DNA of 64,000 bases from Vitrella brassicaformis CCMP3155 (Eukaryota > Protista > Chromerida): contig CDMY01000391.1 of the NCBI GenBank assembly GCA_001179505.1, forward strand, positions 1-64,000, in the 5' to 3' direction. Of the stretch, positions 2,948 to 36,159 are shown piece after piece. A model generated the notes under the pieces. The model saw only the letters and a list, made by a program, of their open reading frames with translations. It ran no database searches and had not been told where the DNA came from. The translations under genes were made by a program, and so were the position numbers. Position 1 is the first letter of the stretch. The number at the start of each line of letters is the position of its first letter.

Positions 2948-4512
2948 ATGATGAGCAGGCAACCGGAGCAGCATCAGGAGCAGCAGCATCCCTTCACGTA
3001 CATCTTCGTTGGTCGTCGCACGTTCTGGCTGCTCAGCCTCACAGACATACTGCGGCTGAGAGCCACCTGCACATGGCTCAGGAGTCTCTTCAAAGCGGCC
3101 CAGCTGAGAGATCGGCTCCGTCACTCTGTCGGCTCACAGGCGGGGCTGCGGCGGGTGGTCAACGGACAGCAGGTGCAGCTGGTGCGGTTCGACGATGACC
3201 AGTTCGGCATGTGTGATCTGCTGGCGGCTGTGTGTGTGATGGAGGAGGGAGAATGGGTGGAGATCGGCGAGGTGATTGAGTGGGCCAGCCAGTGCGGCCA
3301 CTGCACACTGCCTGTCAACCTGACGGCAGATGACATCAACGCACACGCCAATATGACGGTAAGGACACACACACAGGGGGGCGGGAGAGAACAGAGAGGC
3401 CTCATTCATTCCTCTCTGTCTGTGTGTGTGTGGTGTAGGCGTATGGATCGTTTCCCCGTGTGTTGGCGCAGCTCATGGTGGTCGGCCGCCATGTGGCCTT
3501 AGGTGACGGCAGCTGCCTGCAGCTGTTCCAGTATGGCAATGGTGAGGTGCGGGCCATCAAGGACCAGGACGAGTTCCGGCTGACCGTCGACCCGCCCCTC
3601 GCCGCCCACCATCTGTATCAGCGGCATCGACTGGAGCATGACCCACCAGTGGCCAGCGACATGCACTTCCCGTCCACCGATGCGTCGGTGTCGTCGTTGG
3701 CCAAGCGCACGATCCTCAGCCACTTACACTTACCTCAGACTCACCAGATCAATCGCACATCGATACGGCTCAACAGGTGACACATCAGTGGCAGCAGTGG
3801 GTGAGAGGGGTGCGTGTTTGATTTTGTGTGTGTGTGTGTGTATATGCGGTTGGTTCAGGCGTGTTGGTGGCGGCCGTCTGGACGGCCTCCTCACCCAGTC
3901 GCCCCACATACCGGTCGCCAGATGTACCACCACACTCGGCTCGGACGGTGGTGTGCGGTCTCTGGTGCTGACCGACAGCAGCCACAACCTCGTCGCGTGG
4001 ATTACTATTGAGGATCAGGGAAACGACAACGGTAAGGACGACAGACAGACAGATCCGCTGGTCAAATCTCATGTGATATCTGTCTGGGCTGCCTGTGCAG
4101 TGGTGGTGTATGTCGTGACGACCGAAGTTCCTGTGTGTGCGAGCGGTGCCTTCAAGGACCGCTTCCCGGTCACCACTCAGCTGGCCCGTGTGGCGCTGGG
4201 TCAAGTGGCGCCATACGTCTTCGACGGCCAAGTAGACGGTGACAATGACGATGATGATGACGGTGCGGACAGGGGAGGGGGAGGGAGACACACACACATG
4301 ATGGCCATGGTGTGGATGGATGGCATTTCTTCTCTGTCTGTGTGTGTGTGGTGTAGATTCCGACAGTCATGGCGGCGGCTGGGATGATATGGACGTCGAC
4401 AGCGACGGAGAGGGCAGCGGAGGTACACACGAAGGGGAGGGACACCCTCACGTCCATCCGCATCACATAGCGTGTGTGTCTATCTGAAGCCGAAGAGGAG
4501 AGCGGCGAGTGA
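2948..4512 (+). CDS. Lineage-specific multigene family member A (F-box-like N-terminal motif, acidic tail); 6 exons, apparently intact
   Basis: Exons read HPFTYIFVGRRTFWLLSLTDILRLRATCTWLR / VLAQLMVVGRH / RRVGGGRLDGLLTQSPH / FKDRFPVTTQLARVALG / acidic tail. GT-AG introns are in compatible phases and TGA lies at 4510-4512. Four paralogues are in the window. Confidence 0.8.
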
Positions 4513-5317
4513 TCAACCCAACTCAATAACGGACCGCCACAGGTACTCACACACACCACAGTGTGTTCGAATCTTCTGTCTGTATGGGTGTCCTCTTTGT
4601 GTGTGTTGGCAGGGTGTTTGCAGTGCTGTCTGTGGCTGCTTGCCGCCCAGATCGACTCATGGCTGTCTGTGATAGAGAGAGATCGTATGCCGCCCACTCT
4701 GTAGAGAGACCAGCTGCTGACACATGACTGACCCAATGGCTGTGGGTGGGCGACCTGTCTGCGTTGCCCAATCCACTCTCTGTGCACTGCCCTCCCTCCC
4801 TCCCTCCCTCCCTCCCTCTCTCCCTCTCTGTTGGTATGTACCTTTCTGGGTGGCTTCCTGCCTGGCTGGGGGGAGGGGAGGGTGGAGCTGGTGGCCGGTT
4901 TTGACCCTGATGGCTCGGCCGCGGTGTGTGAGTGTGGATGTGTGAGACCTGTCTGCCTGACTAGCTGCCTGGGTGAAGAAAACGGAGTGAGACCTTCTTA
5001 CATGGTATTGATGGCACACATGCCCCTCTCCAGGTTTCTCCCACACCAGTTGGCCAACGAGCTGCATTGGGGTGGCTGCCTGGCTGTGTCTGTGTGTGTG
5101 TTGGTGTGGATGGACTGACTAATGCGCACGTGTCGGTGGACAGAGATCAATACACACACACACACACACACGCTCCTTGGCTGCGCTGCCGTGTCTATCT
5201 GTTTTGCCCCTCCCTCCTCTCCGTCTGGATGGCTGGGGGACACACACACCAGTGGTGCACAGGATGTGTGGATGGATGGATGGATGAAATCTCTTGTCTG
5301 TCTTTGTGTGTGGTGTT

Positions 5318-5750
5318 CCGACGGCCATGACGAGTGACGATATGGATGACGCATCGGCAGAGGAGGATAGCGACGAGGGTGACGGCGACAACGATGATGC
5401 CGACAGTGGTGACGGTGCGGACAGGGAGGGAGGGACGGAGGGAGACAGGGAGGGAGGGACACACACTCGCGCGAATGGATGGCTAACGTGCCTTCTTTAT
5501 GTGTGTGGTGCAGACGGTGATGGTGGCGATGAGAGTGACCATTTGGATGTCGACAGCAAACACGGCAGCGGAGGTACACAGGAGCGAAGGAAAGAAGGCA
5601 CACACAGAACACCACAGATACCCTTGTCTCGATCCGCATCACATACATTTGTGTGTGATTCTGTGTGTCTTGATGACAGGTGAGATGCATCAGCCGAGGA
5701 GGAGAATGGCGGCGTTGACGACACACACACCAATCATCATTATACCTACA
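5318..5750 (+). pseudogene. Orphan 3' tail exons of family member D
   Basis: DDASAEEDSDEGDGDNDD and DASAEEENG exons match the reverse complement of 40675-41110. No upstream family exons are present. Confidence 0.7.
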
Positions 5751-15284: not shown

Positions 15285-18030
15285 GGAGAAAGAGAGGGGT
15301 AGGTATGCGTGTGACGTGTTTGTTGGGTGAGGGGGACAGGTGAGTACCTACCTGTGGCTGTTGGTGAGGGGCGAAGAGAATGGGCAGTCTATCGTACAGC
15401 GATGTGATCTGCTTGCGCACCTCGTCGAGCTGCTCCAGCGCCTGGACACGGCTCTCTGCAGGCAACAAACACACACATCACACACACACACCTCCCACAT
15501 TCACTGGCCGTCGCTCCCACTCACCCACCTAGTTCCTCCAAGTTGAACAGCTGCTGCATCGGCAGGGCATTGCGCACCTCGTCTGCAGTCGGCCTGGCCG
15601 ACGACACCTTGACGAGCGGCACGGGCGCCCTCAGCGTGTCGAAGTGGCCCTCTGCCAGGTCGTGCACCACGCGCACACGCACACGCATCATGGTGCTGTT
15701 GTTGTCGTACAGCTCTGCACACAAGGAAAGGCAGCACAGCACAAAGACACAGCGAGCGAGACAGAATCAGATGTAGTGGGTGGAGAGGGTGATGCTTCCT
15801 TCCGCTTACCGCTGCCCTGCACACCGATCCCGAGGCCGACTTTGTACCCCATCGTGCCGTTGTCTGTCCGCCAGTTGAGCCGGATGGCGATGGAGCCGAG
15901 CAGCAGATGGGCGTACTGCTCGCTGAGGCCGGCCACGAACCGGCTGGCCCGCTGGCCATAGGTGTCGCCGGATGTGTCGGTGCCGTACGTCTCGGTATGG
16001 CTGACGTCATCGGTGGGCGGGGAGGACAGCGGGGGCGTGTTGGTGAGCGAGGCCTTGTATCCGCGGATGGTCACGTCGCGGACAGAGTCGGCAAGGGACT
16101 GGTATGGTGGCGACGGCATGATGGCGGGCGGGTTGAGCTGCAGGACAGATGGCACGCGCAGCTCGGTCAGCAACCTGAGAGAGAGAGAGAGGGGAGATAC
16201 ACGCAAAGTGAGTCGTGACCTTTGTTTGCTGCCATCCATCCATCCATCCATGCTCCACCTTACTCTGTGAGTTCGGTGCGGTTCCGTGCGAGTTTGTGTA
16301 TGCATCCCATCCACTGCTCGTCATACGTCTGACAAACACAGCCACATCACATCCACACGCATACAACACACGAGCCAATGCGATCCGATCATCGCGTGTG
16401 TGTATGGTATGTACGGTCTGGTCTCTGGTCCCCAGTTTCCTTCCCCACTGACTGACCTGTTGTTGGTCGTCGTGGCCGTCAATCCTCTCGCCATTGTACC
16501 CACCGAAACTCTCCTGCCCATGCCCATGCCCATACCCCTCACTCCCACCCCCGCCAGCAGCGGCAGCTGCCGCCGCAGCCACCATTCCCCCGCCCCCATC
16601 CAGCGGCACACACCCATCCTCTCCTCCCTCCTCCATGATCTTGTCCTTCTCCTTCTCATGGCGGCCTCTCATCCCACCAGCAGCGGCCATGGCCGCAGGG
16701 GGAACAGGTGGCGGGGGCATCAGCTCGCCGTCATTCATGCTCTGATCGCCGCTCGCCGCCGCCTTGCGGTGCTTGGCCACGCGCCCCTCGTTCCCACCAC
16801 CACCACGTTCGTCACGGGCGCTGCGGCTGCTGAGCCGTCGCTTGCTGCGGGGGCCACGCTCCCTCAGGGGGCGGTTGTCCTCCTCCTGGTCTAGGTCCTC
16901 CTCACCGCCATTACCGTCACGACCGTCCTGCTTCTGGCCTTGCATGTCCTCATGGCTGCCGTGGCCGTGCTCCTGCTTGATCTCTGGCTGCTTCTTGTTC
17001 TTGCTGCTGCGGGCATTGGGTGCGTGGTCGAGGTAGCCTGGCGGGGGCTGCACGGTGCCATTGATGAAGTCGGTGATGAGCTTGCCCTCACGCTCGAAGG
17101 TCCGGAGCCTCTCCAGACCGGCAGCAGCTGCACACACACGGACAGTGGCCAAACGATCGCGTGTGGACGTGTGTGTTGTGTTGTGTTGTGTTGTGGTCAT
17201 GTGTCACTTTTTTCTTTTGGGAGTTGGTCGAGGCCGCTTATGGCGTTGCGCTGCCGCAGTATCTCATGCAAGAGCCACAGCGTCTTCCTGCCCTTGTCCG
17301 AGCCCGTGTACCGATCCTTCAGCCACACACCCACACACGATAGTATAATTTCGTTCCCATCCCGTGGAAACGACCTTCTGTCTGTCTGTCTGTCTGTCTG
17401 TCTGTGAGGCAGGCACACCTTATACGCCGACTTCATCTCGTCGCCCTTCTCATACAACTGCACACACAGCACAGCACAGCACAGCCGACAGCAACACGCC
17501 CTATTGAGCGGGTGGGGGTGCAGCAGTGTGCCGACTCTCTCCTCGCTCCCTGACTGACCTTGATGTTAGACCTGATACAGATGGCGTACTGCCCCTCTGC
17601 AAGTGAGCGGATGCAGATATAGGCCTTGGTCCGCGACGCGTCAGACCGCAGCGTGGTGATCGTCGGCTCACTCGTCAAATACTCTACACACACACACACA
17701 CAGCGTCACTACTGTGCTGTGTGGTGTTTCGATTCCCCACTGTATTTGATTTCATGGTCGAGGTCTATGCGTACGCCCAGTTGCCAGGTGGGCTTCGGGC
17801 CGCGCTTCCACCACAACAACTCACCTACAGGAACTGCACACCACATCACATCACACAAACAAACAAAGGTGATGGTGCACCGCATCCGATCCGTCTGCAG
17901 GGGTGGTCTCCGTTGTGTTGTGCGCTTCCGTCATGGCCATCGCTGCAGGGGTGGCTTACTGTCCTTGCAGTCGATGTCGGGCGACTTGTCAGGCGGCTTT
18001 GCATCTGATGCTGACGCCGGGAAGGCCATC
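13085..18030 (-). CDS. Large multi-exon hypothetical protein with a possible PWWP/Tudor-like N-terminal segment and low-complexity linkers
   Basis: Exon-like minus-strand ORFs bounded by GT/AG: GELLWWKRGPKPTWQLGVRIDL; YLTSEPTITTLRSD...; VWLKDRYTGSDKGRKTLWLLHEIL; LERLRTFEREGKLITDFING...; LLTELRVPSVL...; ELYDNNSTMMRVRV...; MLKPWVWDRLFYIDALLNKAY. Ends uncertain. Confidence 0.55.
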
Positions 18031-20282: not shown

Positions 20283-22586
20283 TCGATTCATCAGTCATTA
20301 CAGTACTGGTAACTGAGTGTGTGTGTCTGCCGTCAGGAGGGTATTTTGGCTGCTGGCCGTCGTCATTCATCCCTGTCGCCGATCTGCTTACTCTGTCGAC
20401 CAGCTGCTAATCGATGTGTTACTAACCGAATGCCTGACATGGCTCTGATACCTGCGTGAGTCGGTCTATGGCTTCGCCTTTCTCTCTGTGGGGCTCTCCT
20501 CTCTGTGTAGCCCTCCCTCCCTCCCTCCCTCCCTCTGTATCTGTGTCTGTGTCTGTCTGTCGGTGTGGACATCGATTGCGGTCGCCCGTACTCGTGTTTC
20601 CTTCAAACACGCCATTGCAAGTCGCCGTCCGTTTCCCATCCCCGACAGACAGATATCACCCGACAGACACGCACCACCATCTCTCGTGTGTATGGAAACC
20701 AGCCAGCCAGGCCACTCACTCAGCGAGTCATTCAACATGTGGCGACAGACACACAGGCATCAATCACGACGCCGTGTCCTGTCAGCCAGTCAGTCAGCCA
20801 TTCAGCGAGTATGTACACCTACATAGACTTAGTCAGTCGATCGACACGCACACGCTCTCTCACGCCAACCAACCCAATCCAAGACAAAACAAGATGGACA
20901 CCTAGAGCGAGACATACAGAACAGTCGGCAGCCGGCAGCTAGCAACACATCAATCAACCGACCGACACACAACACGCTTGAAATGATGATGATGATGATT
21001 CCATTCCCACGCAGGCAGGCGGGCACGCAGACAAGCAACCAGGCAAGCAATCTAGTGTCTTGTCTTGCGACATGTGCATGGCACTGTCGCTCTCCCTCTC
21101 TGACTGACTGGCTGGCTGGCTGGCTCTTTCGGCCATGGAAACGAACAAACACCGGCCAAGCACCGATGGGTTATCAAACCGTGCCATCGCCACCACAACC
21201 ACCACCGCACAAATGGAGACCAACATGGTCGCGCAACACATCCATTCAGCATGCAGGAGCCTCGTCTGTGTCGTGTTGATCCTGTCATCCGTCGAGGCAG
21301 CGGCGTCGTCGGCTCTGTCTCTGCCCTTTGGTGGAGAGCAGACCCAGCACCAGCGAGACGCACACACCAACAGAAGACGGGAATCAACCGTGCAGACATA
21401 CGTCATCACACCACACAGTCAGACACCGTCGCAGCCCACCCACCCCCCCTCCGTCTTTCACTTGTTTCGCGCCTCCTCCACGTGACGCAGCCTGCTTGCT
21501 GGGGTGAAGTGAGCAAGCAGGTGTCGTCGCATCTGGGAACTCAACACAGCAAACGGGGAAATCTCAACGGCACAAAAAGACACCAGCCGTCTGCCTGCCC
21601 ATCCGACAAGGGGACGACATACAGCGGTTCTCTCGCCCCCCTCCCCTTTTGCGTTGCCCTCTCCGTCCTCTGCCGACGGACCCATCCGCGCCCCAGCAGC
21701 AGACGGTACAGACGAGAGACGGACGCAGCCCCTCATCTGCAGCGTTAGCAGCAGGGATGCAAGGGACCACGACAGAGGAGGATCAGAACGGTGCACTCCC
21801 CTCCCTCCACACACAACGACCAACCGGGATGGTCATCGGCAACACAAAAACAGCAGTGCGTCAAGGCAGGCTGCGTCTCTCATGCAGCCAAGAACGTACA
21901 AAAGGGTACGGTACGTACGCATCCTCTGTCAGAAATGGGACTGGACGAGTACGCAGACACGCGGGCAAAATTGATGCAGCACTCGCCCCTCGTTGCCCCT
22001 CTCCCCAACTCACACAACACACACACTCACAGACACGCGACAACACGAGCTGGGCACGCTGCGGCTGGTCTGAGTTCCCGTCCACTGCAGCAAGATTGCT
22101 TCCTGACGGCACATTTCTCAATGCACCATCTGGAGGCTCTCCAGCCGCGAGTCAAGAGAACACAGAGCAACACGCTGCTATTGCCACCCAAGTCCGCTAC
22201 GCTCTCCTGCAAGACAGAAAAAAACTCTTGCCGTCAACACACACTCGCTGTGACGCAAAACCACACGCATGGACCGCTCCGCTGCAGCAGTGTCGACCCC
22301 ACCATACACACGGTCACAACACAAACACGCGTGTGTGGAGGGGCCGGGCCTCCCTCTCTCTCTCTCTGTTTCTGCGCTCTCCTCTCTTCCCTTTGGGCTT
22401 AGGTACCACGCACGCCAACAGACAGGCACATACACATGCAGGCAGACAGACAGACACGCAATATGCATAGATAGCCATGCAGACAGACACCAGAAAATGG
22501 AATGCCTCCGCCGCGGCGATGTGATCTGTGCGGGCGTCTTGAGTGAGTGAGTTGGCCGTCAGCAGCACCGACCGGCAGCATCATGT

Positions 22587-24271
22587 TCATCCCAGAGTGG
22601 TGTTGCCGCCGCTGATGTTGATGCAGACGGTCTTGATCTCGCTGTAGAAGTCCAGCGAGTGGAAAGTGCCGCTCTTGCCTGAACCAACAAACACACACAC
22701 ACACACACGCGAAGATAAAGCCCTACATCCACCACGCGTCTCCGCCTGTGTGTGTCAGTGTGTCGACTCACCGAGCCCGTGGATGCCAACCCCGCCAAAG
22801 GGCATGCGCAAGTCGCGGATGAGCCACGAGTTGACCCAGACGTATCCGGTGCGGAGCTCGCCGGCCACCCGATGTGCGCGCGAGAGGTCCTTGGTCCAGA
22901 CGGAGGCCGACAGGCCGCTGCCGTTGTTGGCGGCCTCGATGACCTCACTCTCGCTGGTGAAGGTGACGATGCGCACGATGGGCCCCTGGATCTCGCCGGG
23001 GGAGGCCGTCTTGAACGAACGCTCCTTGTTGACCTTGCTAGTCGCGGACAGACCACCCTGATCAGACACAGACAGAAAGAGATATATATATATATATATA
23101 TGTATATGTGTGAATCGGGTCTGGTGGCTGCGTGTCTTGTCTGGGTGTGTCTGACCAGGACGGTAGGGGTGAACCAGTATCCGCCGGCGAGGTTGCCGGT
23201 CATCTGTGGCTGCTGGCCCCCACACAGCACGACGGCGCCCTCCTCCTGCGCCACCTTGAGCGAGTTGATCATGATGTCCAGCTGCTGCTTCGACACTATC
23301 GGGCCGATCTCGGCATCGCTCTCAGCGGGATCGCCCAACTGAGAACACACACAACAGAGGCCGCGTGACAGGGGAGGTGGATCTGTGTCCGTGTCTGCGT
23401 GAGAGCGTGTGTGGGGTGAGGTGAGTTGACCCACCTTGAGCTTCTTGGTGGCCTCGACGAACTTGTCGGTGAACTCTTTGGCGATGGATTGGTGGACGAA
23501 GATGCGGTTGGGGCAGTGGGCGCGCTGGCCGTTGTCGTAAAGGAAGGCCGCACGGACGGCCTCCGGCACCAACTTGGTCAGGTCGGCGTCCTCGAACACA
23601 CACATGGCGTGGCTGTTGCCCAAATCAAACGCTGCACACACACAGACGTGCAGACGTGCAGACAGAAAGTGGATCATTTATGTGTGTGGGTCAGCGTGTT
23701 GGGTGTGTCAGATGTGTTCCCCCCACACCACTCACCCATTTTCTTGATGCCTGATGCGGCGGCCTTGATGATCTCTGCAGCAGCGTTGTCGCCGCCCACC
23801 ATGCCGATGGCGTTGACACCAGAGTGACCTGCCAGCGCGTGACCGACCTCCTCACCAGCACTGACACACACAGACGACGACCCAAAAGGAGAGTTGTCTC
23901 GCTCTCTGCTTCAATCATGTGTTGTGCTGTGCTGCTAACCCGTAGACGACGTTGAAGACGCCCGGCGGCAGCACCCCCGACTGAGCGAGGATCTGGGTGA
24001 AGAGGAAGGTGGTGCACGGCGTGGGGCGGGGAGGCTTGGCCACCACCGTGTTGCCCATGGCCAGGGCGGGCACCAGGCGCCAGAGGATCTGGTGCAGGGG
24101 GCGGGACCACGAGCCGATGATGGCCACCACGCCGACGGGGAACCGCTGAGTGTAGTTGAGGGTGCCCTCGTAGTCGGTCTTGGTCTCCCTCAGGCTGTAG
24201 AGGTTGTGCGCGAACTCGCGGAAGTTCCGCAGCTGGCGACGCATGTCCGCACGAGCTACGGGCAGCGACTG

Positions 24272-24325
<54 letters not shown>

Positions 24326-24832
24326 GCAAATGAGCACAAGGGTGTGGGTGTGATGGTGGGTGTGGTGTGAGCAAGGCAATCAGATCTGACCTTGCCCATG
24401 TTGACGGCTTCGAGTTTGGCGAGCTCCTCCATGTTGGCCTCGATGAGCTGCGCGATAGTCATGAGGATGTCGATGCGCTGCTCGCGAGTGGTCTTGGACC
24501 ACTGCGGGAAGGCCGACTGGGCCGCCTTGACTGCCGCATCCACATCAGCATTGCCGGACAGGGGCACCGTGGCGAGGGCCTTGCCCGTCGCTGGGTTGAA
24601 GGCCTGGGCCGTCTTGCCCTCCTGCGTCTCGACGAACTGGTTGTTGACGTAGTTCTTGATCACCTGCACACACACATACCACATGCACACCTGGCGAAAC
24701 ATGAAACGCTCACATGCCGGCAGGACAGCTGTTCGGCTGCATCTGCCCTGCTCTTTCGTCCACTCTCCGTCGGGCATCTACTCTTTTCTCTCTCTCTCCA
24801 TCCCCCCACCCCAGCGCACCCACCTGCGTCAT
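22587..24832 (-). CDS. Aldehyde dehydrogenase-fold protein (ALDH8A1/2-hydroxymuconate semialdehyde DH-like) lacking canonical catalytic residues
   Basis: Eight spliced exons from MTQVIKNYVNN to EIKTVCINISGGNTTLG*. ALDH motifs: FNPATG, PVGVVAII, PALAMGNTVVAKP, LPPGVFNVVYG, GYVWVNSWLIRDLRMPFGG. Subfamily call rests on the WLIRDL..PFGG motif. Confidence 0.9.
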
Positions 24833-26099
24833 CTTGCTGGCTGCGAGATGGGCTTGAAGATCAATCGAATTCGGCAGATGCAGCAGTGCGGAGGGTGCAG
24901 CACACAGACAGAAAGACAGTGGTAGCCACGCGGGACGGCACAACGTCGTCAGCGTCCAGTGCTGATGTAGCTCGCACTGGGCTAGGACATTCTGTGAAAC
25001 TGCTCCCCGAAGTCAAGAAGCGCAAACTGGAGGAAAACTCGTGAGGGGAGCGCGGCCGTGCTTTCTCATACGAGACGACTGCGGTGACCAGAACCCACCC
25101 AGTCACAGACCATTCCTCTCTCTGTGGGTGGTCTGGTCCGATGAAAGTGCGCGAGTGCGAGTAATCGGACGGCACAAGTGCGGGAGCTGGTGAAGTGGTC
25201 CGTTCGCCAGCGATGCCCTCACTGTAAAGGAAGCCCAGGACCGGCACCGCCACCCGACTCGTGGTGGTGAAGTTTTCTCATTGCCCACCCGCACTGCCGG
25301 GCTGAGCCCTTCTCTTCTCTCTCGGACAGCTGGACCGCACCAACAAGGTAAGGTACGCACAGCCGCCGACACGACACAACACGACACCCAACATGCCCGA
25401 GACACGTATGTCGGGGTGTGTGTGTGTTCCCGTGTGTTGGAATGGTCATGCAGACTCTGCGCGCATTGCCAAGCCGACAGCCACCCGCGGAATTAAGCAG
25501 TCAGCGTCCGTCCGACGCCGCCAACAAGTCCGTCCGCGATCACTGATGCGCAAGGGAGAGGGGGGGACGGTGCGCGCGTGGCGTCTGAGGTCGGTCTCTC
25601 TGTCGCTGAGCCGCTCCCCTGGTGAGTCTCGCGACCCCTCCATCCATCCATCCATCCATTCCGCAGCCGACCAACACCACACCCGCCACCCCGACCAACA
25701 CAACACAAGACATCAACCAACCGATCTGGTGCCACTGGGCACCACCCCGTGACCTCTGCCAGCCATGCCGTCCATCAGGGAGACTCACTGCGTGTGTGCC
25801 GTGTGTGGATGCTGTGCGCCGCGCCCTGCTTCTCCAATCTCACGCCCTCGTCTTCTTGTGCACATCCATGTGTGTGTGTGTGTGTGTGTGTGCCTGTGTG
25901 TCAGGTCGCCGCTGAGTCGTCGGCGGTCGAGCTGTCAGTAACAGCCATCGCTGCATTGGTGTGTCCATTTTTGGGGGCCGCTGCACGGGTCAGATGATGG
26001 CGCCTCAGTCAGATACTCTGTTATCGTGTGATTGAGAGTGCAATCGCTCCTTGCAGTGGGTGCTGCCTTCGTAAGCCTTCAAGCGGCTGGTGCGGCTGG

Positions 26100-34354: not shown

Positions 34355-35243
34355 TCAGTCTGTGAACTTCATTTTCGCCCCTGTCTGGCAGCAGCACTTT
34401 AGTCGGGCATCTCCTTGTGTTTCATAGTCCGTGCCGACCTACAGGCACACAGGCAGGCAGGCAGGCATGAAAACACACAAACAACGCTGACTGGACTGAC
34501 GATGTTCTTTGTCTGCATGGCATGCATGATCCCTCCCTTACGTACGATGAATGCGTAGAGCTTCTCCTTGAAGAAGACCTCTGTGGCGTCGAACAAGCAT
34601 TTCTTTTTTTGCTCGAGGCAGGTGACCTCTATCAGCCGGCCAGAACCCTCCCGCGCGCGCGACACAGCCTTGGCCACCTCCATCGGCTCCTAAACCCAGT
34701 AATACCCACGACATCACACACCACACATTCATCTATCGGCTGTTGTTTCGCAACGAGATGGTGCTGCACCCACCAGGTAGCATTTCCTCAGCTCCCTGGA
34801 AACACACACGATGGACACAGACACATACCAGGAGGGATCCATCCATCCATCCATCCATCCATCCATCCATCCATCCATTTTCCTCACCGGCTGGGCGCCT
34901 GTGGTGTCTGCGGCGTGTGTGTGAGAGTGCGTCGTGGGGCGAGGGTGGAGGGCGGTTGGGGTGCGGTCCCGACGGCGAATTCTCCGCCGAGGGCGCAGTC
35001 CTCCCTCTCGCAGGCGTCTGCATCTGCATCTGCACATCCATCCATCCATTCCGCCACACACATGGAGGGGATCCGTCCATCGCATCTCACCCCACCCCAT
35101 CAATATATGGCCACTGGCGTCTGGGACTTACCGAGGCCGTGGAGGCCGTGTTGGGTGTGGATCTCTTCGCCCGCCGCCAATGGGCCGCAGAGGGCAATGA
35201 GCGCAAACAGCAACGCCAACATCGCAGATCTGCCCGCCATCAT
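34355..35243 (-). CDS. Small secreted Cys-containing protein, arm-2 copy with a P/T-rich insert
   Basis: First 23 aa identical to the arm-1 copy; DADACEREDCALGGEFAVGTAPQPP...PSR / ELRKCYL / EPMEVAKAV...TCLEQKKKCLF...YAFI / VGTDYE...KFTD*. Confidence 0.7.
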
Positions 35244-35537
35244 TTTCTCGCTACGGTATTCTCGACGTTCGATCGGCCAGGAGGTTGTTGTAAACAGCGA
35301 TGACCAGACCTTCAGCCAAGCATGGTTTGCTTTGGACCAGACTGGCTCGGGAGGCCAGCAGCGCTCCCACAGCACTAGCTGTGCTCGGAAGTGCAGTGCA
35401 TCCGGCCGCGGGCGACAGTACAGTGTGAGTGCGCGTTGTGGTGCAGAGGACGGCTGGGTGAGGTCGAGGCAGTCTGAGACAATCGGTCTGTGTCTGTGTG
35501 TCTGTGTGTCTGTCTGTCTGTCTGTGAGTGCCTGTAG

Positions 35538-36159
35538 GCCGAACTCGATGAATGACGGTGGCGTGCTTAAGCGTGAGATGGGCATGGACGCCTTCTTCGG
35601 TCGGCTGCTGAGTGACGTCCTCACTCCCACAGCCCACCGGCTGCACCTGCTGCCGCCAGACGCCACGCTCGACTCCCACAAGACATTTACCGTCGTCTAT
35701 CAGCACCCAATGGTTGGTATGTGTTTGTGTGCGTGTGTATGCCCATCTGTCTGTCTCTCTACTTACTGTGGATATATGTCCGGTTTGGCTCACACCGTGT
35801 GTGTGCCTGTGTCATCTGTGTCATTCAGGGCGACGTTGACCTGGCGCCCCGCTTCGACAACGCAGTGAGTGAGTGGGGAGGAAGAGAGACGGTCACCATT
35901 CATTGAATGCATTGCTATGCTATGGGATGCCATTCGCCGGATGGTTTGGTTGTTGTCCGCTCTCTCTGTTTGCCGCCAGGAGGTGACACTCAACGTCAAC
36001 ATTGCCGGCGAGTTCACAGGGGGCGACTTGACCTTTCTCGGGCCTGACGAGGCGCTCGTGCCTGTGGGGCCATCTGAGAGAGAGGGCGACAGGCGCGCTG
36101 TGACGGTGGCACAGCGGCCGGGCATTGGGGTCGTCCACTCGGGATACGAGCGGCACCAG
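35538..36159 (+). pseudogene. OGFOD2: 5'-truncated OGFOD2-like copy; HxD motif reads RxD
   Basis: Begins in the intron before the RPNSMN exon. Exons GDVDLAPRFDNA / EVTLNVNIAGEFTGGDLTF...GVVHSGYERHQ; CGC at 35850-35852. Confidence 0.7.

Follow-up and report, generated by a model that had tools for sequence, protein, structure and literature searches.

The gene described here lies at positions 22587-24832, on the minus strand, of a 64,000-nucleotide stretch of the chromerid Vitrella brassicaformis CCMP3155 (GenBank assembly GCA_001179505.1, contig CDMY01000391.1, positions 1 to 64,000; hereafter the window), and encodes a protein of the aldehyde dehydrogenase (ALDH) fold whose closest canonical relatives are the ALDH8, AMSDH and HMSDH enzymes (~40-44% identity to canonical members). 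In AMSDH, two arginines, Arg120 and Arg464, hold the carboxylates of the substrate. The ALDH-derived crystallins, which stem from ALDH1 and ALDH3 and include the omega-crystallin of cephalopods and scallops as well as corneal ALDH3A1 and ALDH1A1, illustrate the recruitment of this fold to non-catalytic or ultraviolet-related roles. ALDH16 proteins are ~800 residues long and possess an extra C-terminal domain. Mammalian ALDH16A1 is an ALDH pseudoenzyme that lacks the entire catalytic triad and is conserved and expressed (PMC10650815). The functions of the known ALDH-fold pseudoenzymes are mostly obscure. From the side of metabolism, EEVS and MT-Ox together produce gadusol, and their genes are adjacent in a pelagophyte and in a green alga (PMC4426668); a green-algal neighborhood comprising EEVS, MT-Ox, MysC and OMT has also been published (PMC7826186).

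The Vitrella protein resembles ALDH16A1 in possessing the ALDH fold, in lacking the catalytic triad, and in being conserved and expressed, but belongs to another ALDH family: it is a single-domain protein of 497 residues, lies nearest to AMSDH and ALDH8 by sequence and tree, and is not an ALDH16 orthologue. It also differs in that the replaced site is highly conserved in the algal/Vitrella branch of the clade to which it belongs, and in that the algal genes of that clade are clustered with biosynthetic genes. With the crystallins it shares an ALDH fold that may have been recruited to a new role, a possible analogy for a sunscreen-binding protein; to our knowledge, neither a rebuilt His/Asn/Gln pocket nor a link to EEVS and MT-Ox is known for any crystallin. 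Two algal loci analyzed here (L005 and L006) contain, like the gadusol pairs, an EEVS-type cyclase and an MT-Ox-type methyltransferase, but add an ALDH-like gene, an MFS gene and, in L005, SnoaL genes, whereas the Vitrella gene is unclustered. Searches of the literature outside subscription journals turned up neither a Cys-less family of algae or cnidarians that derives from ALDH8 nor an ALDH-like member of gadusol clusters. The remodelled ALDH8-like family is apparently undescribed.

Results

The residue register was set by phmmer alignment of the exon translations to PDB chains of AMSDH and ALDH structures; the roles of Cys302, Glu268, Asn169, Lys178, Glu476, Thr244, Gly271, Phe401 and Gly250 are known from ALDH2 and AMSDH. 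In the Vitrella protein, Ala283 (codon 23519-23521, minus strand, as for all codons given here) occupies the position of the nucleophile Cys302, Asp248 (23624-23626) that of the general base Glu268, and Ser149 (24104-24106) that of the oxyanion-hole Asn169. Accordingly placed in the alignments are S147-W-S149 over P-W-N169, K172-P-P-R over K-P-S-E, D248-L-G-N over E268-L-G-G, G-Q-R-A283-H-C285 over G-Q-x-C302-x-C/A, and E394-I-Q-G-P, with a nine-residue insertion just before it, over E-I-F-G-P; the multiple alignment further reveals MVGG in place of FTGS and GKSG in place of GREG. An earlier note on this stretch, made from the letters alone, had named the three catalytic replacements and the altered cofactor motifs (KPPR, MVGG, EIQGP with its insertion, and GKSG), and both sets are borne out, the former down to the exact codon coordinates.

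Replacement extends well beyond the catalytic triad. Both proton-relay partners are exchanged (Lys178 for Arg, Glu476 for Ser), as are the residues on the nicotinamide side (Thr244 for Val, Gly271 for Asn, Phe401 for Gln, Gly250 for Ala); the protein further differs from AMSDH, HMSDH and ALDH8A1 in having His at the positions of Asn273 and Leu303, the latter being His284 (23516-23518), and in one additional residue before GQ. Asn251 and His253 (23609-23617, Asn-x-His), where canonical enzymes have Gly and Asn, are invariant in 16 of 16 clade members. Trp168, Lys192 (Lys172 of the Vitrella protein), the GxGxxxG stretch, Gly245 (Gly226), Glu399 (Glu394) and Arg307 are kept. The AMSDH substrate arginines Arg120 and Arg464, mapped through the PDB alignments, correspond to Arg105 and Arg453 and are also kept in all algal members of the clade. 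At residue 175, the position of Glu195, the Vitrella protein has Arg and the algal members have Ser.

A Cys does survive two residues downstream of the nucleophile position, as the earlier note had observed in suggesting that it might be recruited. This residue, Cys285 (23513-23515), is the second Cys of the C-L-C motif of ALDH8 and AMSDH, at which 20 of 24 canonical relatives have Cys, and within the remodelled clade it is kept in the Vitrella protein only, all other members but one having Ser. Since the distance from GQ to the next conserved Arg is unchanged, Cys285 sits at +2 and off the nucleophile position. The note had also foreseen that structural alignment might shift the retained Cys onto that position; alignment to solved structures does not do so. 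Because the thiol nucleophile, the oxyanion Asn and the Glu base are absent and the residues that hold the nicotinamide are replaced, the protein would not oxidize aldehydes by the ALDH mechanism; the aligned residues make it as good as shown that thiol-dependent aldehyde dehydrogenase action is excluded.

The gene that encodes this altered protein is intact. Its eight exons join into a coding sequence of 1494 nt that specifies 497 residues with zero internal stops, and all seven introns (79-160 nt) have GT..AG borders. Not one of 2000 shuffles of the coding sequence remained open (mean 12.7 stops per shuffle), and G+C content at third codon positions (GC3) is 0.88, as compared to a G+C content of 0.41-0.60 in the introns. 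Matches to the Pfam Aldedh profile (PF00171) run collinearly through exons 2-7 over profile positions 1-439 and place the protein in the ALDH superfamily. The start codon at 24832 is the first in-frame ATG, with an in-frame stop ~180 nt upstream, and the N-terminus is collinear with the start of mature ALDH8-type proteins, leaving no targeting extension. The stretch is present in eight public runs, whose type (RNA or DNA) was guessed rather than annotated. Contigs from three transcriptome runs (X1 and X2 belong to the same study, X7 to a second one) cover all eight exons and lack all seven introns at the modelled borders with zero mismatches, and run X3 holds the unspliced genomic form. As contigs without introns can arise only from RNA, the Vitrella gene is transcribed and correctly spliced. 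The eight in-frame, stop-free exons read in the earlier note agree with both gene model and transcript contigs, and its proviso that the gene might prove unexpressed is answered by the spliced transcripts in X1, X2 and X7. The decaying duplicates that it placed nearby were not found: a tblastn search of the entire window with the protein as query returned no other ALDH copy, only matches of 13 and 25 residues (E 0.025, 17219-17312).

The altered site is not peculiar to Vitrella. An exhaustive HMMER search of a representative library of 1.84 billion proteins, which may not include Chromera or Perkinsus proteomes, with exon 5, the in-frame intron 5 and exon 6 as the query (window 23156-23629, minus strand), yielded no match above 46% identity, the Vitrella protein itself not being among the matches. 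Two of the top matches, one from a coral (P0001) and one from an alga (P0013), bear the same derived motifs. The related sequences comprise an anthozoan set (Stylophora, Pocillopora, Oculina, Acropora, Nematostella and Actinia) and an algal set (the green alga Pycnococcus provasolii, the pelagophyte Chrysocystis fragilis and many ocean metatranscriptome sequences). The cnidarian genes reside on megabase-scale scaffolds and are thus truly cnidarian. In the clade [S/H]-W-[S/A] stands for P-W-N, L-G-N-x-H for L-G-G-K-N, G-Q-x-[A/V]-H-S for G-[Q/E]-I-C-L-C, and E-x-Q-G-P for E-I-F-G-P; Lys178 is replaced by Arg or His, Thr244 by Val, Gly250 by Ala, and Glu476 by Ser or Thr, and one extra residue precedes GQ. 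The resulting signature consists of Val225, Ala231, Asn251, His253, His284, Gln396 and Met457 together with the lack of Cys302 and Asn169. The Vitrella protein possesses 8 of 11 clade-specific near-invariant residues and the extra residue before GQ, which places it in the clade, and retains 56 of 63 general ALDH invariants.

Phylogenetic analysis (IQ-TREE, LG+C20 PMSF), from which 65 motif columns were removed, recovers the remodelled sequences as a single clade with support of 99/98, which appears in every bootstrap tree (100%) and is nested among ALDH8, AMSDH and HMSDH. The Vitrella protein is sister to the algal group (support 91/84) on a terminal branch of 0.73, within the range of active relatives. 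The affinity to ALDH8A1 and HMSADH proposed in the earlier note therefore holds by sequence and by tree. Taken together, alignment and tree place the gene in an old clade, derived from ALDH8/AMSDH, whose members have a rebuilt site in common; it is not an isolated alveolate oddity. The note had known of no dead ALDH of this subfamily in alveolates; we likewise found none described, yet relatives with the same rebuilt site occur in marine algae and anthozoans.

The fold was approached through the closest relative, P0160 (46% identical), whose AlphaFold2 model served as a proxy for the Vitrella protein. This model (pLDDT 93.3, pTM 0.92) has AMSDH as its best structural match, with a TM score of 0.97 and a root-mean-square deviation of 1.6 Å.

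A three-motif DNA pattern for the algal/Vitrella type had no match in 185,579 bacterial and archaeal genomes, a narrow test that is no proof against a bacterial origin. Metagenome loci matching MPFGGWK, several of them bacterial contigs from gut metagenomes, were set aside, as all 80 are canonical (28-33% identity) and the pattern is common to ordinary bacterial ALDHs. An Atlas feature search returned generic ALDH clusters only.

The family also has local peculiarities. The ALDHs of the pelagophyte-type subgroup carry a Cys-rich insertion of ~20-25 residues before E-H-Q-G-P. The annotated protein P0433 of Actinia tenebrosa is ~7 residues short at the GQ..H motif, a gap seen in no other member, which may reflect either an error in the gene model or a real deletion.

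We next consider conservation at the altered positions. The 22 functional positions at which the algal consensus differs from canonical enzymes were compared with the rest of the protein by Fisher test. Among nine algal sequences, 19 of these 22 remodelled positions are invariant, as against 134 of 452 elsewhere (p ~1e-7); with the Vitrella protein added, the counts become 16 of 22 and 101 of 452 (p ~1.5e-6). Asp248, Asn251, His253, Arg282, His284, Gln396, Arg158 and others are nearly invariant replacements in this branch. Nei-Gojobori ratios of nonsynonymous to synonymous substitution (dN/dS) for two algal pairs are 0.16 (dS 0.74) and 0.22 (dS 0.69). The sequence comparison indicates that strong purifying selection acts on the rebuilt pocket within the algal/Vitrella branch, and that the Vitrella protein is functional and selected is well supported.

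The algal genes also share a genomic setting. In Pycnococcus provasolii (L005; CP150553.1, 760209-781798) the gene order is remodelled ALDH, SnoaL, SnoaL, MFS, a fusion of Methyltransf_3 and SDR domains, and a dehydroquinate synthase (DHQS)-like gene; the fusion, of 592 residues, has the architecture of MT-Ox. A second, metagenomic contig (P0309) has the identical gene order. A pelagophyte-type contig (L006), with an ALDH that shares only ~55% identity with the Pycnococcus type, carries in succession Methyltransf_3 (cut off by the contig end), DHQS-like, remodelled ALDH and MFS. The partners in L005 and L006 are homologous, with identities of 41.5% over 366 residues for the cyclase, 37.6% over 271 residues for the methyltransferase and 27.7% over 202 residues for the MFS protein. 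The L006 cyclase scores 254 bits against the EEVS ValA (4P53) and 196 bits against the DDGS 5TPR; true dehydroquinate synthases reach at most 112 bits, and the protein falls below the NCBIfam aroB cut-offs. Adjacency to gadusol-type genes is therefore found for the algal orthologues in L005, in the P0309 contig and in L006. The two publications on EEVS/MT-Ox neighborhoods mention no ALDH-like, SnoaL or MFS member (PMC4426668, in whose text the word "dehydrogenase" does not occur; PMC7826186, in which the same holds for "aldehyde").

In L005, a formate-dehydrogenase-like 2-Hacid_dh gene precedes the remodelled ALDH, and the SnoaL genes encode ~380 residues each; the locus is a candidate for a gadusol-type cluster of extended form. 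In L006, hydrophobic N-termini that resemble signal peptides occur on both the EEVS-like protein and the remodelled ALDH (1338-2867 and 3600-5333). Because the pelagophyte-type ALDHs have N-termini of this kind, a secretory and therefore NAD-free location was considered, but it was given no weight, since the neighboring EEVS has such an N-terminus too; the pair of signal-like N-termini points instead to a shared compartment.

Discussion

The results are consistent with a cytosolic, ALDH-fold protein of a family that branched from ALDH8/AMSDH-type enzymes with its catalytic and nicotinamide pocket rebuilt. The fold, the cofactor residues on the adenosine side (Lys172, Gly226 and Glu394) and the substrate arginines (Arg105 and Arg453) are retained, and the new pocket would be polar, lined by Asp248, Asn251, His253, Arg282, His284, Gln396, Arg158 and His153. 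In the mechanism that we propose, the old substrate tunnel would receive a small, anionic molecule anchored by Arg105 and Arg453, which the rebuilt chamber would bind, or transform without thiol or hydride chemistry; the ligand may come from the gadusol/mycosporine (C7-cyclitol sunscreen) pathway. The near-invariance of the replacements, the retention of the substrate arginines and the place of the algal orthologues in a biosynthetic cluster fit a rebuilt ligand-binding or active site no less well than they fit a dead site. We assign a probability of roughly 55% to the reading in which the old tunnel takes an anionic small molecule, the chamber has been rebuilt as a polar pocket that binds or transforms it, and, in the algae, the ligand derives from EEVS/MT-Ox (gadusol-type) metabolism. 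That the link to gadusol metabolism carries over to Vitrella would follow by analogy from orthology and, in our judgment, falls somewhat short of even odds. We further suggest, tentatively and as possible rather than probable, that the remodelled ALDH8-like proteins constitute a new functional class. They would be either an enzyme that needs no thiol and might depend on His or on a metal, or a dedicated binding protein, in both cases acting on gadusol/mycosporine-type cyclitols, and so a hitherto unrecognized component of eukaryotic sunscreen pathways.

Several observations weigh against the rebuilt-pocket reading. No EEVS, MT-Ox, SnoaL or MFS homologue is present within the 64-kb Vitrella window, the loci of Nematostella, Stylophora and Oculina lack sunscreen genes within 10 kb, and the cluster evidence comes from orthologues that are just 40-46% identical to the Vitrella protein. 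Among six cnidarians the remodelled positions are not specially conserved (4 of 22 invariant, as against 145 of 420 elsewhere), and the Glu268 position is occupied by His, Arg, Asn, Ser or Glu. The cnidarian branch, in which Asn251, His253, Gln396 and mostly His284 are kept, looks more like a relaxed pseudoenzyme, and given this drift the family may be without a single common function. In a tree built without metazoan canonical ALDH8A1, moreover, it is solely the signature residues held in common, together with the common insertion of one residue, that exclude a separate cnidarian origin. Finally, the His/Asn/Gln pocket is drawn from residue equivalence to solved ALDHs, from which we infer that these side chains would cluster in space.

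A classical pseudoenzyme would account for some of the same facts. Such a protein would act as a scaffold or a regulator or, as has been suggested for ALDH16A1, would join an active ALDH in a hetero-oligomer as its inactive partner, and would perform no small-molecule chemistry; the link to sunscreen clusters would then be regulatory, or irrelevant to Vitrella. The replacement of all catalytic residues, the retention of the ALDH fold and of many general invariants, oligomer-forming regions included, the drift of the old site in cnidarians, and the lack of pathway genes beside the Vitrella gene or the cnidarian genes examined are all in keeping with it. We consider this explanation unlikely, though by no means negligible, as conservation of the protein in the algal/Vitrella branch is highest at just the replaced pocket residues, the replacements are polar and of catalytic type, both substrate arginines are kept, and the gene lies within biosynthetic clusters in two lineages. 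The earlier note had concluded in favor of a pseudoenzyme with a non-catalytic role; the missing catalytic set and the intact gene on which it drew stand, but for these reasons its conclusion becomes one option among others. Retention of Lys172, the GxGxxxG stretch, Gly226 and Glu394 on the adenosine/ribose side would likewise suit an NAD(P)-dependent oxidoreductase that dispenses with covalent catalysis, passing hydride to or from a gem-diol, enol or ketone with Asp248 and His253 as acid and base, or one that employs Cys285 as a displaced nucleophile. The Asp/His pair is indeed conserved in the algal branch, and at residue 175 neither the Vitrella protein (Arg) nor the algal members (Ser) have the Glu whose loss is common in NADP-preferring ALDHs. 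Yet the residues that position the nicotinamide are all replaced, and Cys285, which the unchanged spacing from GQ to Arg prevents from sliding into place, gives way to Ser or Ala in every other clade member, so that we regard either form of this proposal as improbable.

Least probable by far is an incipient pseudogene, inactivated recently and still transcribed. Such a gene could lack the catalytic set and could have accumulated lineage-specific changes of the kind seen at 7 of 63 otherwise invariant ALDH positions. Against this stand the open frame of 497 codons, the 14 of 14 intact splice sites, the strong codon bias reflected in GC3, the correct splicing in three data sets, substitutions shared with relatives of very ancient divergence, and a terminal branch no longer than those of active relatives.

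Three features set the remodelled family apart from known ALDH-fold pseudoenzymes: in algae no part of the protein is better conserved than the "dead" site, the arginines that anchor the substrate are kept, and EEVS, MT-Ox and a transporter are neighbors in two distant algal lineages. A dead enzyme thereby becomes a testable candidate for a step, a carrier or a binding partner in gadusol/mycosporine biology, a pathway of interest for reefs and for biotechnology. If true, this would clearly exemplify the rebuilding, as opposed to the loss, of an enzyme pocket, and would point to a sunscreen component that Vitrella, a coral-associated chromerid, has in common with marine algae and that persists in more relaxed form in anthozoans. 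Should the pathway link fail, there would still be a well-defined new family of ALDH pseudoenzymes with an unusual distribution over algae and anthozoans.

Gene structure and additional features of the loci

All features of the gene lie on the minus strand. Transcript contigs extend upstream to 24948 and delimit a 5' untranslated region of at least 116 nt (24833-24948). Exon 1 (24824-24832) consists of the ATG and two further codons, its splice junction to exon 2 (24663/24824) being present in the contigs, and exon 2 (24391-24663), likewise confirmed by spliced contigs, covers Pfam Aldedh profile positions 1-81. Arg105, S147-W-S149, His153, Arg158 and K172-P-P-R175 are encoded by exon 3 (23940-24268), as located by the gene model, Pfam and the PDB alignment, and the altered GxTxxG cofactor motif, M224-V-G-G with Ala231, by exon 4 (23736-23860), as located by the gene model, Pfam and the multiple alignment. 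Exon 5 (23435-23631) contributes both F-D248-L-G-N251-S-H253 and G-Q-R282-A283-H284-C285, placed by the gene model together with PDB and multiple alignments; exon 6 (23156-23338) follows from the gene model, Pfam and spliced contigs. The nine-residue insertion, E394-I-Q396-G-P and Arg453, the equivalent of AMSDH Arg464, fall in exon 7 (22772-23057) by PDB and multiple alignment. Exon 8 (22587-22678) encodes G-K469-S470-G and ends in a TGA stop, as supported by the gene model, spliced contigs and the alignment. Downstream of the stop, transcript contigs define a 3' untranslated region of more than 1.1 kb (22100-22586 and ~650 nt further below 22100), which is unusually long.

Intron 5 (23339-23434) is 96 nt long, stop-free and in frame, such that its retention would add 32 residues between exons 5 and 6; in the contigs it is spliced out. 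Runs X1, X2 and X7 each include a contig whose match to the window extends upward from 23543, within exon 5, and which then continues, on the gene strand, with non-window sequence beginning GTGAG. This break could reflect either chimerism of the contig or a second locus that shares part of exon 5 but has its intron elsewhere. A comparable loose contig end occurs at 22438, in the TGTC-rich 3' untranslated region.

Pfam searches of ten long open reading frames around the gene revealed no clear domain. A 465-codon open frame at 34471-35865 on the plus strand has a weak, OGFOD2-like match (E 2e-4) whose score of 21.8 bits lies below the threshold of 31. In Stylophora (L008) and Oculina (L009) alike, a gene for a class-C G-protein-coupled receptor (ANF_receptor and 7tm_3 domains) follows the remodelled ALDH, an instance of conserved synteny. 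Within the Vitrella gene itself, introns at 24269-24390, 23058-23155 and 22679-22771 contain CT/GT, AT and GT microsatellites.

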